A stretch of 64,000 nucleotides of DNA from positions 230,945 through 294,944 of IMG/VR virus record IMGVR_UViG_3300045971_000344, one strand, 5' to 3'. Shown here in pieces: positions 58,079 to 63,393 of this stretch (position 1 is its first letter; each line of letters starts with the position of its first letter). The notes under the pieces are model-generated. The model had not been told where the DNA came from. It saw nothing but the letters and a program-made list of their open reading frames with translations, and made no database searches. The position numbers were made by a program, and so were the translations under genes.

Positions 58079-58786
58079 ATGCCACACAAGATTATTCCAA
58101 AAGCAGTAAATGAGAAACATAACATTGAAACCTGTAACTTACCTGGACCTCTATTAGTAGCTTTTCAAAACATTTTAGATCATTTAAGTCGGCACAATGA
58201 TCTATCAGAATCGGATAAATCAAATTACGCTGATACCGTTGTAAGATCAACTAAGGCCTTCATGGATTTGACAAAGACGCGTACTGAAATTTGTACTGAT
58301 TTAGTAGAAATCTTATCCACGGGATTTCCTCTTACAGACGTAACTGCTAACATTGGAATGCAGACTCATGGGCCTATACACTTATATTCTTTTTGTCCAC
58401 ATCACTTACTGGCTGTTAAATATAGTGCTTATATTGCTTATATCCCAAGAGCTGACCACATTTTAGGCTTATCAAAGATAACAAGATTAGCACAAGCTTT
58501 GGCAAGTAGACCTGTTCTTCAAGAACAGCTTTCAGAAGATATTGCGGATGTTTTGTTTTATCAAGAATCAACCAACCCCAATATCCATTATTTACCAGCA
58601 ATAGAGACAAAAGGTTCTGCTGTTTTGTTGACCGGTCATCATAGTTGTATTTCGTGTAGAGGAGTAAAATCTGAAAATCTTGTTACTCAAAGTTCTTTAC
58701 GAGGAGCATTTTGGGAATTAGATATGGAGCAAAAATTTCATGCAATGATTACTGCAACTAGAGCAGCACGAAATTCCGAACTCTAA
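58079..58786 (+). CDS. folE: GTP cyclohydrolase I
   Basis: SFCPHHLL, AYIP, GLSKITRL, RPVLQEQL, HSCISCRGV. Confidence 0.88.
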   Translation: MPHKIIPKAVNEKHNIETCNLPGPLLVAFQNILDHLSRHNDLSESDKSNYADTVVRSTKAFMDLTKTRTEICTDLVEILSTGFPLTDVTANIGMQTHGPIHLYSFCPHHLLAVKYSAYIAYIPRADHILGLSKITRLAQALASRPVLQEQLSEDIADVLFYQESTNPNIHYLPAIETKGSAVLLTGHHSCISCRGVKSENLVTQSSLRGAFWELDMEQKFHAMITATRAARNSEL

Positions 58787-58806: not shown

Positions 58807-59364
58807 ATGATTATTCAAAAACTTACCCTTGAAGAATTACAAGTCAAGATCCAAAAGGGAAAAAAGTACAAACAACTTCTAGAAGCATTTCAGACGAATA
58901 GACTGTATAACATAAATTTGGATGAGTATAAAGAAGAAATAACAGCTCTTCATCGTGCTAGATCAATCCGGACTCTTATTAATTTTTGTAATGACAAGGC
59001 CGCCACTAGTATGGTAGACGAAGTCATACGAGCCAATCTTACAGACCAAGCACAAAGGGGACGTTTAACAGAGATTCTCTTGACCTGCGTTAGAGCGTCT
59101 AATGCCTTGAATGAAGCAATTAGTGTATTTAAGGACTTTGCTTTGATTAGGTATGACTCGTATCTGACTAAGATAAAGACAAAAGGTGAAAGGGCTACCT
59201 TTCTGGACACACTCTTATCTGATATGCAGACATACAGCGCAGATTGCGAGCTCGTTATTAACTTGGCAAAATTGGTAATTGCAGATATAGACCAAGGCGG
59301 ATGGGCTCTCTCCAGAACAATAGAGGCTCTGAAGATAACTAACGCCCCTGAAAAACGGATATGA
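58807..59364 (+). CDS. Helical hypothetical protein (possibly UvsY-like)
   Basis: All-helical; directly upstream of the SF2 helicase; function not established. Confidence 0.55.
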   Translation: MIIQKLTLEELQVKIQKGKKYKQLLEAFQTNRLYNINLDEYKEEITALHRARSIRTLINFCNDKAATSMVDEVIRANLTDQAQRGRLTEILLTCVRASNALNEAISVFKDFALIRYDSYLTKIKTKGERATFLDTLLSDMQTYSADCELVINLAKLVIADIDQGGWALSRTIEALKITNAPEKRI

Positions 59365-59365
59365 T

Positions 59366-60508
59366 ATGGATCTTAAACCTAAAGTAATTTTGGATAATAA
59401 GTGTTGGATCCCTGCTTCGTTATTGAGCCTAAAGAGAGTTAGATCTCGTTATTTAGTTTATCGTTATGAAGAAAAAGCCTGTATTAAATGCGAGCACCAA
59501 CAAGAAAAAGGACCTAATGATGAACCTTACTATCTCTGTGAAAGTTGTGCAGGGTTTTTAGGTAAGTATAAGCTCTATGAAAGAAAAGAAATAAATGGCG
59601 TACCGTACATTGGGTTCCATAATGGAGACCGGCTGAATCTCTGTAAGAAGCTTAAGTTAGACAAAAGTGTATTTAAGAATACAGTCGATAATCGTATTGA
59701 GAAAAAGTTTAAATACGATATTAACTTTACTGGTACATTGCGTCCTCATCAGATAGATGCCTTAAAACAGTGGAATGACTATAACTTTGGTCAGTTAATG
59801 GCTCCACCACGTTCAGGGAAGACCGTGCTCGCGGTTAACCTTACTGTTAACCTAAAAGTACGGACCCTTATACTTACGCATCAAGGCGATCTTTTGGACC
59901 AGATGCTACAGTCCTTTTATGACTTCACAGACATAAAGGACGTAGAATTTGAACATAAGAAACAGCTGGTAGGTATAGCAAAGAAACCCGAGGACTTTAA
60001 GAAATGGCCAATTGTACTCGCTACCTATCAGAAGTTTATAACCCCAAAGGGTAAAAAGAGACTTGAAAAGATCGTTAAGAAATTTGGACTCGTTATAGTG
60101 GATGAGGTTCATCGTGCTAATAGTACATGTTTTAGTGCAGTCCTAGCACAGTTTCATGCTAAGTATAAAATTGGATTCACAGCCACACCCAAGAGGAAGG
60201 ATTGCTTCATAAAAGGCACTCAAGTACTCTTAAGTAATGGGGAATACGCGCCTATAGAAGAACTAGCAAAAAATCCTGAGAAGTTTTCAGTTAAAACTTT
60301 TAATCATTCTTTAGGGGTTATCGAAGATAGTAAAATACTATTAGGTCATACTAGAAAAAAGTCTTCATTAATTAAGATTAAGTATAAAGGAGACTATATT
60401 GTTTGTACTCCAGATCAACAATTTTGGTCAAAAACACGAAAAGCTTATATTAATGCCAAAGACCTAGAGCTAGGAGAAGAAATCTTAGACTTTAGTGATA
60501 TAGCGTAA
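59366..60508 (+). CDS. SF2 (UvsW-like) helicase N-half fused to split-intein N-fragment
   Basis: LRPHQ, PPRSGKT, DEVH, TATP, then intein block A CFIKGTQVLLSNG at 60203. Confidence 0.9.
   Translation: MDLKPKVILDNKCWIPASLLSLKRVRSRYLVYRYEEKACIKCEHQQEKGPNDEPYYLCESCAGFLGKYKLYERKEINGVPYIGFHNGDRLNLCKKLKLDKSVFKNTVDNRIEKKFKYDINFTGTLRPHQIDALKQWNDYNFGQLMAPPRSGKTVLAVNLTVNLKVRTLILTHQGDLLDQMLQSFYDFTDIKDVEFEHKKQLVGIAKKPEDFKKWPIVLATYQKFITPKGKKRLEKIVKKFGLVIVDEVHRANSTCFSAVLAQFHAKYKIGFTATPKRKDCFIKGTQVLLSNGEYAPIEELAKNPEKFSVKTFNHSLGVIEDSKILLGHTRKKSSLIKIKYKGDYIVCTPDQQFWSKTRKAYINAKDLELGEEILDFSDIA
60203..60505 (+). mobile_element. Split intein, N-fragment (101 aa)
   Basis: Cys1 block A; block B IVCTPDQQFW; YINAKDLELGE. 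Confidence 0.88.
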
Positions 60509-61561
60509 TACTTGTCTACGTGTCAGCTCGATCCAGTTTATTGGTAATTTTATTTTTTCTTTTTTGCTATTATAGCAGTATAGTTTAAACTTAAAGCCTT
60601 GCTTAATACACGCTTTTGCTTTTTTCTTAACTTTATTAAATTCACTTGGACTATTATGGTATAGTCCAAGTGTATAGTCAGATTTTACTTCTATTATTAA
60701 GTTTTTATGAGGAATAAAGATATCAGGGTAATAAGTTTTACTTTTACCTTTAAACTTATAAGAGATCTGTGGTATGGCTTGACCAAGTCCTGCATTAATG
60801 GCACTAATCTCGTATTTTTTAGAAAGTTCTTCTAAAGCTAAATGTTCATACCCTTGGATAATAAATTTTTTACCTTTAAGCTTAAACGTAAAAGTTTTTC
60901 TTTTATTTTTGTCTATTGCACATTTTCTACAACCAGTATAGCCCTCCTTAGTTCCAAGAATAGCTCCTAAAGTAGTTTCAAATACACTGTCACAGTCATA
61001 GCATATAACTTTTACTCGGCTCTTAGCTGGATCCTCTGAAATTGAAATAAGTTTAATCTTATGGTTATGCTTACTCATTTTATTTTTTATTCTACGTTTT
61101 ATTTCTTTTTCTGTTAGTCTATTCTTTTGTCCGCCTACTTTAGCTGCACAAATAGGACACCCATAACTTGTTTTTAGTACTAATCTAATTTTATTATAAA
61201 ATATGTGTCCTTTATTACACTCTATTTTTGCCAAGTCTTCCCTTGTTTTTTGAGTTCTTAGTACTATGAACCCAGGAAAGCGTTGTTCCAATTCGTCAAC
61301 TAGTTCTTTAGTTTTATTAACCCAAGCATTAAATCGTGTTTTTATTCTATTTTCTGTTTCCTTTTCTTTACTGCATTTTGGGCATCCCGATTTTCTAGCA
61401 GTAACTAAATTACTTGGTTTTTTAGAAAAAATATTTTTACAAACTAAGCACTCACATTTTACTTCTTTACTTTTCTTTATGTATTTTTCTAAAACTTTAA
61501 TTGTTGGGTGAATATCTAGCATTTCCTTTAAAAATTGCTCTTCTGTTCTTTTTGCACTCAT
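60485..61561 (-). CDS. Free-standing putative homing endonuclease (zinc-ribbon repeats + PD-(D/E)xK domain)
   Basis: Three C..(C/H)...GC(P/R)xC repeats; YYPDIFIPHKNLIIEVKS; the only credible antisense gene; SD GGTGG. Confidence 0.8.
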   Translation of the reverse strand: MSAKRTEEQFLKEMLDIHPTIKVLEKYIKKSKEVKCECLVCKNIFSKKPSNLVTARKSGCPKCSKEKETENRIKTRFNAWVNKTKELVDELEQRFPGFIVLRTQKTREDLAKIECNKGHIFYNKIRLVLKTSYGCPICAAKVGGQKNRLTEKEIKRRIKNKMSKHNHKIKLISISEDPAKSRVKVICYDCDSVFETTLGAILGTKEGYTGCRKCAIDKNKRKTFTFKLKGKKFIIQGYEHLALEELSKKYEISAINAGLGQAIPQISYKFKGKSKTYYPDIFIPHKNLIIEVKSDYTLGLYHNSPSEFNKVKKKAKACIKQGFKFKLYCYNSKKEKIKLPINWIELTRRQVLRYITKV

Positions 61562-61666
61562 TTAGTATTCCACCTTTTTACACTAAAATTAACGGCTACT
61601 CCTATATGTATAAATTATGTAATTTAATATTAATGCTTAGGAGTATCACTAAACTTAGGAGAAAAT

Positions 61667-61783
61667 ATGCCAGTAGAAGCCATTGAATACTTGAATTTTA
61701 TAGAAGATACTTATGACATTACAGTTGAGTCTAATAATAATTTTTTTATTAAACAAAATAATAGTACTTTATTGGTTCATAAC
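61667..61783 (+). mobile_element. Split intein, C-fragment (39 aa)
   Basis: Block F TYDITV...NFF; block G VHN followed by Cys+1 at 61784. Confidence 0.88.
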
Positions 61784-62617
61784 TGTTTAGAGTTTGTAAT
61801 TGAACAAATTATTGGTCCAGTTACTTCTAAAATTGAACCTGAACAGGTTATACCTAAAGTATTTGTCCATGAGTCTGGTGTTAAGCCCAAGCATGAGTAT
61901 AAGCAGTGGGTATATGCAATGCAATTTCTAGCCAAAGATAAGGACCGTCAGAAAATGATAGTTGATATGGCTGTTAAAGACGTTATCGCCGGATACTACG
62001 TAGTTATCCCTGTTGTCTTTGTTAAACAGGCCAATGAACTCGCAGATGCAATAGAAAAACGTCTGTATAAGAAATACGATAGACGTGGTCTTGCTATTGC
62101 TTTTACTTCAAAGGTAAAGGACAGAAAAGATGTATTGGAAAAGATACGAAAGGGTAAAATAAAGGTTACTGTAGGTATACGCTCTCTTATACAGGCAGGT
62201 ATAAATGTTCCTCGCTGGTCATCTATAATAGAATGTAGTCCTATAAGTAATAAGCCAAATCATACTCAAGAGATTGCCAGGATCCGAACACCCGCACCTG
62301 AGCTGAATAAACCACAACCCATTATACACCAAATAGTAGATGAAAAGATGGGTGGAATGAGTACGGGTTGTTTCAGAACCTGCTTTCAAGTATACAAGGA
62401 CTTTGAATGGGACCCATCTAGTTACGCTGAGGCAGTACGTTTATTAAGGGGATTAAAGCCCTCGTCTAACTATGATGAGTACGCTGTTAAGCCCGTTAGG
62501 CTCATACAGAATGATAAGTCACTTTTTGATGATTCTTCTAAGTCTACTAAAGACAAAACTGTAAATAAGGAAAAACGTGGTTTTGGGTTCGGTGGGCTAA
62601 ATCCAAAAATAAGGTGA
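61667..62617 (+). CDS. Split-intein C-fragment fused to SF2 helicase C-half
   Basis: SD AGGAG; TYDITVESNNNFF...LLVHN/C; then GINVP (motif V) and QEIARIRT (motif VI). Confidence 0.9.
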   Translation: MPVEAIEYLNFIEDTYDITVESNNNFFIKQNNSTLLVHNCLEFVIEQIIGPVTSKIEPEQVIPKVFVHESGVKPKHEYKQWVYAMQFLAKDKDRQKMIVDMAVKDVIAGYYVVIPVVFVKQANELADAIEKRLYKKYDRRGLAIAFTSKVKDRKDVLEKIRKGKIKVTVGIRSLIQAGINVPRWSSIIECSPISNKPNHTQEIARIRTPAPELNKPQPIIHQIVDEKMGGMSTGCFRTCFQVYKDFEWDPSSYAEAVRLLRGLKPSSNYDEYAVKPVRLIQNDKSLFDDSSKSTKDKTVNKEKRGFGFGGLNPKIR

Positions 62618-62622
62618 GAACC

Positions 62623-63393
62623 ATGAGTAAAAAGAAAAAACGTGAGATCGAAGAAGACGAAGATTCTCATTTATTGGACGATGAAGACGAGGAAGATAAG
62701 AAACTAGAACAAGAAGAAGAGGAAAAAGAAGAACAAGATAAAAAGAAAAAGAAAAAAGTTAAAGAACTTGGATCAGTAAAGATTTCGCATAACCATGACG
62801 TTAAATTTGCCAAGCTCTTGCGGTCCCGTGGGGTTTCAACTCTGGATTTACTTCATGGCTCGCGCTCGTTTCTTCTTGAAGACGTTATACTACCAATTGA
62901 ATCAAATACTTGGGAACGGTGTAAAAGAATAAGCTCAGATAAACAGCTTGGATGGTATCATCGTGCCTATCAGAAGGTATTATCCAATAACTGGCTCTGT
63001 GCAGGTATAGGCGGAACTCCAACGGATGCTCGTGCAAAGCAAGTAGCTCTCCATATTTTTATAAAAGCAATCTATGAGTATCAAGAGCGAGATCCTAGAA
63101 AGAACGTTGGACGCGCATTGCCTTATTGGCACAACGTCTATGGTGGGTTCAATGATTATCTTAGAGATTTGAAATCAGATTTTCCATCTTTTATAGTAAT
63201 CTCTAATATCACGCCTACCTGTACTTCTTTGAAGCTCGAAAAAGTTAGAGATGCTTTAACACGTTATACAAATATGGAGATACCTGTACTTGTTGTTTGT
63301 GCGGGTATGGATCCCTTTACCCTCTTTTCATCTAAACTTTATTTCCCCATAAAATGGTGCTTAAACATTGGTAATCCTTTGGTAGCAGTCTGA
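62623..63393 (+). CDS. Hypothetical replication-region protein
   Basis: Acidic/basic N-tail plus alpha/beta domain; no intact Walker A. Confidence 0.65.
   Translation: MSKKKKREIEEDEDSHLLDDEDEEDKKLEQEEEEKEEQDKKKKKKVKELGSVKISHNHDVKFAKLLRSRGVSTLDLLHGSRSFLLEDVILPIESNTWERCKRISSDKQLGWYHRAYQKVLSNNWLCAGIGGTPTDARAKQVALHIFIKAIYEYQERDPRKNVGRALPYWHNVYGGFNDYLRDLKSDFPSFIVISNITPTCTSLKLEKVRDALTRYTNMEIPVLVVCAGMDPFTLFSSKLYFPIKWCLNIGNPLVAV

Follow-up and report, generated by a model that had tools for sequence, protein, structure and literature searches.

How is a helicase made when its gene lies in two pieces, with the gene of another protein in the opposite orientation between them? The question is raised by positions 59366-62617 of the window analysed here, 64 kb of DNA that form the end of a 294,944-bp virus record in IMG/VR (IMGVR_UViG_3300045971_000344), which is rated 100% complete and was assembled from a pond metagenome. 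An upstream gene (the N-gene) encodes one lobe of the enzyme and a downstream gene (the C-gene) the other. An earlier reading of the letters by themselves (the sequence-only reading) had proposed that a naturally split intein fractures the gene and that trans-splicing would restore it. On the sequence comparisons the element is a split-intein fractured gene, real and well supported, and it is one member of a recurrent jumbo-phage family whose carriers include cultured phages. The helicase is probably assembled post-translationally, and a fractured gene from which trans-splicing would restore the enzyme is, with rather better than even confidence, the best explanation of the whole. The two genes and their parts are these:

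59366-60508, plus strand: the N-gene, 380 aa, consisting of a 279-aa N-extein (ending TATPKRKD) and a 101-aa N-intein (IntN).
59366-60202, plus strand: the N-extein, the helicase N-lobe, 279 aa, ending KRKD (Pfam, PHROG and invariant alignment columns).
60203-60505, plus strand: IntN, 101 aa, from Cys1 (TGC at 60203), with the stop codon at 60506-60508 (missing from intein-free homologues; aligns with 13 related N-inteins).
61667-62617, plus strand: the C-gene, 316 aa, consisting of a 39-aa C-intein (IntC) and the C-extein.
61667-61783, plus strand: IntC, 39 aa, ending LLVHN, its Asn codon at 61781 (Pfam Intein_splicing positions 123-155; own-genome match to PF14890).
61784-62617, plus strand: the C-extein, Cys+1 (TGT, 61784-61786) and the helicase C-lobe, 277 aa including Cys+1, with the stop codon (Pfam Helicase_C).

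The open reading frames and junction strings of the sequence-only reading, the start of one frame and the end of another, match the window exactly, and the Shine Dalgarno sequence it gave to the C-gene is found as AGGAG 6 nt 5′ of the ATG. The intein comes to light as complementary parts of a single Pfam model: IntN corresponds to positions 2-92 of Intein_splicing and IntC to positions 123-155, each at E = 0.008; half domains can be expected to miss the curated cut-off, as both do here. IntN matches the own-genome profile at 2e-34. Alone, the window intein has a weak match (0.02) to a bacterial intein-like (BIL) domain. A family profile of 14 N-inteins from this helicase family, the window's included, matches solved inteins, the nearest being NrdJ-1 (8.7e-15), then the BIL domain (2.7e-13), with PolII, DnaE (~1e-7 to 1e-5), DnaX, RecA, DnaB and gp41-1 as further matches; a search of 1.84 billion representatives with this profile gives 29,745 proteins at E<=0.001. 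The split intein that had been proposed is upheld by both the paired Pfam matches and the profile.

Its sequence blocks are those of an intein with two departures. Cys1 is invariant in all 14 aligned N-inteins, and every C-intein examined has a terminal HN followed by Cys and keeps the block-F Asp. The window intein has the block-B Thr, the block-F Asp (YDITV...), LLVHN in block G, Cys1 and Cys+1, after which the C-extein continues LEFVIEQIIGP. The first departure, a Gln for the block-B His, is taken up below. The second is in block F of IntC, YDITVESNNNFF, where the Asp is kept and the usual His is replaced by Asn (ESNNNFF), at a position which is variable (H/N/S) within the family; the sequence-only reading had made no mention of this change. 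The intein is assigned on these comparisons to class 1, split at the canonical endonuclease-insertion point. IntN carries 14 D/E and 15 K/R, and IntC 6 D/E and 1 K, a net charge of about −5. The sequence-only reading was right in its count for IntC, but wrong to consider such acidity unusual: C-intein charge varies within the family, and gp41-1 and gp41-8 likewise pair a positive N-intein with a negative C-intein (PMC2677866).

The host protein is, by its domains, an SF2 (superfamily 2) helicase whose lobes are shared between the N-gene and the C-gene. The N-extein has an N-terminal CxxC...CxxC zinc module, a Walker A sequence APPRSGKT (~59801-59824), motif II as DEVH (~60101-60112) and motif III as TAT (~60179-60187). 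The N-gene matches Pfam ResIII (1.7e-25) and DEAD (3.6e-11) and PHROG 16, DNA helicase (8e-33); the C-gene matches Helicase_C (4.4e-5). Of the earlier label ‘SF2/UvsW-like’ the first half survives, on ResIII, DEAD and Helicase_C, and the second gives way to XPB/Rad25/ResIII-type proteins as the closest. The sole matches of the N-extein in the PDB at E<=0.001 are XPB, XPBII and Rad25 (nearest solved, XPBII and XPB), with no UvsW structure at that threshold, and its best NCBIfam matches, none of them near the cut-off, are XPB, EcoAI R and Rad25. The homologue in phage PaBG was called uvsW by its authors, whose paper mentions inteins only in terminases (PMC7412058).

Where the intein sits is fixed by intein-free relatives. 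A word-based protein search yields five full-length, uninterrupted homologues (P0002-P0006; 535-554 aa, 52-60% identical), all of which run from TATPKRKD straight into K/R-x-EF-hhE-HIhGPVTS. The alignment with such homologues, suggested with the original proposal as a check, is one-to-one for both exteins across KRKD/C, directly after motif III, with K/R where Cys+1 stands here. The C-extein shares 62-67% identity with the C-terminal regions of P0002 and P0005, and the ligated exteins would total 279 + 277 = 556 aa. Within the 295-kb genome each helicase lobe occurs only once, and there is neither another intein nor another endonuclease of the type found between the halves. Since the helicase is single-copy and is conserved across 74 phage loci of IMG/VR, its function has to come from the fractured gene. 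Synteny is also kept around it, with a clamp-like protein, small open reading frames, the helicase, and a DNA polymerase or tail sheath nearby.

A simpler fate for a broken gene is decay. On that account the cassette broke the helicase, the intein has been inactive since and the enzyme is no longer needed, which would suit the two non-consensus residues in catalytic blocks. It is very unlikely, as the extein frames are full length without frameshifts or stops, have all helicase motifs and are 52-67% identical to intact homologues; the gene is single-copy and lies in synteny beside replication genes across many jumbo phages; and the endonuclease frame is intact too. This last gene and its flanks are laid out as follows:

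60485-61561, minus strand: free-standing endonuclease gene, 358 aa (Pfam, PHROG, conserved core and AlphaFold (AF2) model).
60485-60508, no strand: convergent 24-nt overlap of the 3′ end of the N-gene with the 3′ end of the endonuclease gene (open reading frame coordinates).
61562-61666, no strand: divergent intergenic region, 105 bp, 26% GC, with the Shine Dalgarno sequences of the endonuclease gene (AAGGTGG, minus) and of the C-gene (AGGAG, plus).

An endonuclease between the halves was part of the sequence-only reading, and one is there; that it is on the minus strand is a detail which had not been given. Its N-terminal part consists of treble-clef zinc-finger repeats (~60914-61504; DUF4379, DUF723, DUF7836) and its C-terminal part is a PD-(D/E)xK nuclease domain (~60527-60913) with conserved E239, D280, E291 and K293. 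Pfam gives DUF7487 at 1.6e-19 and, sub-threshold, a TnsA-like family at 2e-4; the PHROG matches (559, 681, 15137) are annotated endonuclease. Relatives share a QGYE...PD...(I/V)EVK core, which is the canonical PD-(D/E)xK signature, and the window gene, single copy in the genome, retains all conserved catalytic residues in an intact frame. The AF2 model has a pLDDT (predicted local distance difference test score) of 82, and of >90 in the nuclease domain. Foldseek found nothing in the PDB for it at E<=0.001. VIA-align, which is independent of Foldseek, placed residues 217-345 with TnsA (Z 8.3), Vsr (Z 8.0) and the catalytic domain of I-Bth0305I (Z 5.8), ahead of a long list of other restriction-fold nucleases; the modelled fold, at Z values that are middling, supports the PD-(D/E)xK restriction fold as its class. 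A sequence search of the PDB with the endonuclease profile gave zinc-finger noise and matched no solved nuclease. The enzyme is presumably of homing type, cutting intein-less alleles and so driving spread of the cassette.

That cassette (60203-61783, ~1.58 kb) has a GC content of 29.4%, the lowest of any stretch of its size in the window (mean 38.7%, standard deviation 2.7); the dips at relatives' loci are smaller. In the spacer, 61600-61660 forms an imperfect inverted repeat (TACTCCTA ... TAGGAGTA), with AGGAG-like sequence on both strands. RNA folding of the divergent intergenic region gave z-scores of −0.3 and +0.4, a fold energy no better than that of shuffled sequence, and a promoter and terminator scan gave hits no more frequent than in shuffles.

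Could the arrangement be peculiar to one metagenomic assembly? The virus sequence is metagenome-derived, and the two pond-metagenome runs in which the locus is recovered are possibly its source samples and so do not count as independent support; these are the grounds on which an assembly artefact, or a chimera of two phage variants, might be argued. In each run the locus lies on one ~60-kb contig with 0 differences over 58900-63100 and an even depth of ~25x, and across that interval the contigs of both runs contain no variant, no intein-less form and no alternative joint. The same architecture is present in assemblies made independently and in cultured phages with complete genomes, and an artefact is barely conceivable. 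One stretch nearby, 62700-62850, draws many unrelated short contigs in both runs, to a depth of ~146 vs ~26 elsewhere, which is a mapping artefact rather than a copy-number signal. It belongs to the gene after the helicase (62614-63393), whose product has a long low-complexity N-terminus, Glu/Asp-rich and then Lys-rich (GAA/GAG and AAA repeats), and it is this sequence that attracts the contigs. On the other side, two genes upstream of the helicase and after the clamp-like gene, is a GTP cyclohydrolase I gene (58079-58786; Pfam 1.4e-26), not seen in the syntenic loci of relatives, which may act in a pathway related to deazaguanine or folate.

The recurrence was followed through 78 related loci, gathered by exact-protein look-ups and an IMG/VR scan and then scanned with hidden Markov models for five parts; a megablast search of 50,697 phage records with the locus gave no match. 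Most jumbo-phage relatives have a contiguous, intein-free helicase. The window architecture (N-half, antisense DUF7487 endonuclease and C-half at the same site) is found again in a 31-kb ENA contig (L003), a 214-kb NCBI contig (L004), a 238-kb contig together with an independent Logan contig (L005/L006), and the cultured Dickeya phage vB_DsoM_JA11 (L015), with phage JA33 giving the same match. The published annotation of JA11 has the halves as two ‘putative DNA repair helicase’ genes with a ~1.1-kb gap between them and no intein annotated; within that gap there is an antisense endonuclease frame of the DUF7487 family, intact and likewise unannotated (L081:4617-5692; NC_048077.1 about 129445-130520).

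A second site, inside motif II (DE/C), has split inteins homologous to these, again paired with an endonuclease of this family, in L011, L017, L045 and the cultured Yersinia phage fHe-Yen9-02, where the same element is not annotated as an intein. At a third site, the P-loop, there are contiguous inteins in L012, L045, L050 and L074. The endonuclease is antisense also in L003, L004, L005, L011, L015 and L083, and on the plus strand in L017; convergent overlaps of 11-64 nt occur in L003, L004, L005 and fHe-Yen9-02. Taken over its three sites (after GK of Walker A, after DE of motif II and after KRKD beyond motif III) the helicase family is a hot spot for inteins. Carriers at the motif II site are L011, L017, L045, L083, P0041 and P0029, and two inteins, one contiguous and one split, occupy a single gene in P0029 and in L045. 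The endonuclease of L017 (L017:3702-4421) is on the host-gene strand and is without N-terminal zinc fingers, and that of L045 (L045:3506-4303) is reduced to fragments, states which fit a homing-endonuclease decay cycle in which the split intein persists. A second, free-standing DUF7487 endonuclease gene lies ~1 kb upstream of the fractured helicase in L004 (L004:16-1257), so the DUF7487 family occurs outside inteins too.

In one relative the halves have parted company. This is a complete 140.4-kb phage with terminal repeats (G001), whose helicase is split at the same site as the window's, with the halves ~32 kb apart on opposite strands. The N-half (L085; about 75.2-76.3 kb, plus strand) has an IntN of 78 aa ending right after block B; the C-half (L086:1336-2265; about 108.6-109.6 kb, minus strand) has an IntC of 49 aa and a C-extein that starts CLEFVIQEILGP. 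No endonuclease was detected beside the N-half, and no C-half near it. Halves so far apart, and on opposite strands, have to be joined or associated at the protein level.

This relative bears on the one outcome that the sequence-only reading had named as fatal to itself along with a failure of the halves to splice or associate, namely that the two frames are joined by RNA-level splicing. The interval would then be a group I or II intron with an endonuclease frame, and the intein-like ends a coincidence; PD-(D/E)xK/Vsr-like endonucleases do occur in group I introns too (PMC2677866). The interval 59000-63000 matches no intron in Rfam at E<=1, nor any other family bar a chance sRNA (small RNA) match. 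Hint blocks A, B, F and G are in frame exactly at the junctions, the endonuclease gene is antisense to its host gene, the C-gene has its own Shine Dalgarno sequence and ATG, and in the relative just described 32 kb separate the halves, which are on opposite strands; all of this makes an intron extremely improbable. Joining or association at the protein level is favoured because of these in-frame Hint blocks, the start signals of the C-gene, the antisense endonuclease, the want of an intron signature and the dispersed relative.

From this anatomy we infer expression, association, splicing and homing of the following kind. A mobile cassette (60203-61783), consisting of a split class-1 intein and, on the opposite strand, a free-standing gene for a homing-type endonuclease with zinc fingers and a PD-(D/E)xK domain, would have inserted in the single-copy XPB/ResIII-like helicase gene directly after motif III. 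Its origin is probably that put forward by Dassa et al. 2009, integration of an endonuclease at the canonical site of an intein so that the gene was broken in two. Two polypeptides would be made, N-lobe plus IntN (380 aa) and, from its own ribosome-binding site, IntC plus C-lobe (316 aa), and the intein halves would associate through a basic patch in IntN and the acidic IntC, with the polarity of gp41-1. Protein trans-splicing would follow, by way of a thioester at Cys1, transfer to Cys+1 and Asn cyclisation, ligating KRKD to CLEF, with Gln72 taking the place of the block-B His. The product would be a helicase of 556 aa, differing from its intein-free homologues at the junction only in having Cys for K/R at +1, and endonuclease cutting of intein-less alleles would spread the cassette.

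The His on which nearly every intein relies is missing from block B, and the position in question is as follows:

60416-60418, plus strand: Gln72 of the intein, codon CAA, at the position of the block-B (TxxH) His (alignment; no variant in the contigs of both runs).

Here the window reads C-T-P-D-Q, Thr being kept and His replaced, as the sequence-only reading had noticed (TPDQ instead of TxxH). Gln72 aligns with the His of NrdJ-1 (CTPDH), of the BIL domain and of 12 of the 14 related N-inteins. Friedel et al. 2018 rank the block-B His first in conservation among intein residues and call it essential in many inteins and only ‘important’ in some; a very small group, the Tko CDC21-1 orthologues, is naturally without it, compensates and still splices, and bulky residues at −1 are also able to compensate (PMC6333167). 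The residue at −1 in the window is Asp.

The loss is not confined to the window. Three of 15 family N-inteins are without the His: the window's (Gln), that of L005/L006 (Glu, GAA) and that of L045 (Gln, CAG), with every other catalytic residue intact in all three. Each of these has a nearest sampled relative with His, and two insertion sites are involved, which suggests that the block-B His has been lost independently more than once in the family. The Gln codon CAA is one step from a His codon, and the Glu codon GAA two steps from His and one from CAA; Gln may be a tolerated intermediate between His and Glu. A covariation of the block-B with the block-F His was considered and abandoned. The states are Q/N in the window, E/S in L005 and H/H in L003, L004, L017 and L083, and the rule held for the first four pairs and then failed with L015 and L011 (both H/N) and L045 (Q/H). 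Among inteins at large, a general search found His in 469 of 474 aligned N-intein domains from the 150 best representatives, and of the five exceptions one is the window and one looks like an alignment shift. With the window excluded from the general set, 3/15 vs 4/473 gives a one-sided Fisher p = 8e-4, on a sample of few, hand-collected and related sequences which makes the value indicative only, a reservation that belongs with those that follow.

Several considerations weigh against splicing by the window intein. Change of the block-B His to Gln could, by analogy with other inteins, abolish or slow the N-S acyl shift, and the block-F His is replaced as well. The Gln substitution could be recent. 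No close relative of the window intein was found in IMG/VR or the JGI metagenomes, either with the single protein or by junction-anchored alignment (these searches yielded JA11 and one 140-kb phage, nothing further). Nor was a promoter for the C-gene detected above chance in the promoter scan.

These considerations lead to the alternative that the intein, or its N-terminal activation alone, has lost function, and that its halves dimerise tightly but non-covalently, giving a two-chain helicase held together on a catalytically silent Hint fold. Loss of both His residues, one of them essential in many inteins (PMC6333167), would agree with it, and the recurrent change in the family (Gln, Glu, Gln) also fits relaxed selection on catalysis. 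It has a model in fragmented NrdA, a phage enzyme split by a mobile element and reassembled with no splicing. The NrdA of Aeromonas phage Aeh1 is reportedly cut by a mobile endonuclease gene and works as two chains without being spliced. Unlike the window locus, which has the full set bar the block-B His, Aeh1 NrdA has no intein catalytic residues. Cys1, Asn and Cys+1, which have no known non-catalytic role, are kept in all three members without the His and throughout the 15 N-inteins and 12 C-inteins examined; Cys+1, moreover, stands in place of a conserved helicase K/R and would be a cost without benefit should splicing be lost. There are also natural inteins that splice without this His, the Tko CDC21-1 group (PMC6333167). 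A silent dimerisation module is on balance unlikely, if still a serious contender. Splicing of the fractured helicase is favoured because it is the sole copy of a conserved enzyme, the endonuclease is intact and Cys1, Asn and Cys+1 are retained, and the Gln variant is judged rather probably splicing-competent.

For the family as a whole, we infer that the block-B His may be dispensable or compensated. A stronger form of this idea is that jumbo-phage helicase split inteins are a lineage in which that His is dispensable and which trans-splices efficiently through an unrecognised means of activating the N-terminal scissile bond; it is offered tentatively, as somewhat less than an even bet. If true, natural split inteins that do without this His would be met here for the first time; they would offer a new handle on the mechanism and perhaps a tool for orthogonal ligation. 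Its mirror image is that the inteins may have been domesticated in these helicases as non-splicing heterodimerisation modules. The recurrent loss of the His therefore poses the question of whether phage split inteins splice without it or have become mere association domains, and cultured Dickeya JA11/JA33 and Yersinia fHe-Yen9-02, which carry the element unannotated, make it directly testable. It is a matter of some practical interest, as naturally split inteins are workhorses of protein ligation and few families are characterised. In addition, one helicase family spans intein-free genes, a contiguous intein, adjacent halves with an endonuclease and halves 32 kb apart, which bears on the origin of split genes.

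Among known systems the cyanobacterial DnaE intein (Npu/Ssp) resembles the window's in being of class 1, in its natural split and in having both Cys1 and Cys+1. The IntC of DnaE is basic, a charge polarity opposite to that of the window intein. The host and site are also different, the window halves are adjacent around an endonuclease and block B has Gln; it is the dispersed relative G001, with its halves at distant loci, which resembles dnaE-n/dnaE-c. The Tko CDC21-1 orthologues likewise have the most conserved residue missing and other catalytic residues kept, but they are contiguous, archaeal and have Leu at −1, whereas the window intein is split, phage-borne and has Asp there; that group compensates by a residue or by strain at −1, while the His-less helicase inteins carry Gln or Glu with no compensating residue identified (PMC6333167). 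The PolB gene of jumbo phage vB_PaeM_MIJ3, another replication gene, is similarly divided by an intein, its halves lying on either side of an endonuclease frame, and differs in its host protein, a Ser nucleophile, an HNH endonuclease and TEDH in block B (PMC6892783). Searches of open-access text found no earlier description of a split intein in UvsW/SF2 helicases, of jumbo-phage helicase inteins or of DUF7487, though such absence is not proof.

The nearest counterparts are the fractured genes of Dassa et al. 2009, 26 loci with eight host types (gp41 as gp41-1 to gp41-9, IMPDH, DnaE, NrdA, NrdJ as NrdJ-1/2, ligase, terminase and one unknown), which have IntN of 88-105 aa and IntC of 33-54 aa, ranges that include the 101 and 39 aa of the window (PMC2677866). 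As there, the intein is split where an endonuclease canonically inserts, and a free-standing endonuclease gene lies between the halves (PMC2677866). The differences are in the particulars. The XPB/ResIII-like SF2 helicase is outside the eight listed host types; the 2009 loci have all three frames on one strand and a short spacer before the endonuclease gene, whereas the window's, like that of most relatives, is antisense and overlaps the 3′ end of the N-gene (PMC2677866). Their endonucleases are GIY-YIG or Vsr-like (I-Bth0305I), that of the window being, by motif, a zinc-finger protein with a canonical E-PD-ExK core (DUF7487, TnsA-like), and all the 2009 inteins have the block-B His where the window has Gln (PMC2677866). 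The fractured gene is a kind already known, and its host and site, its antisense DUF7487 endonuclease and the recurrent block B without His are its unusual traits; compared with the 2009 catalogue, its kind of host protein, its site of insertion and its endonuclease partner are all additions.

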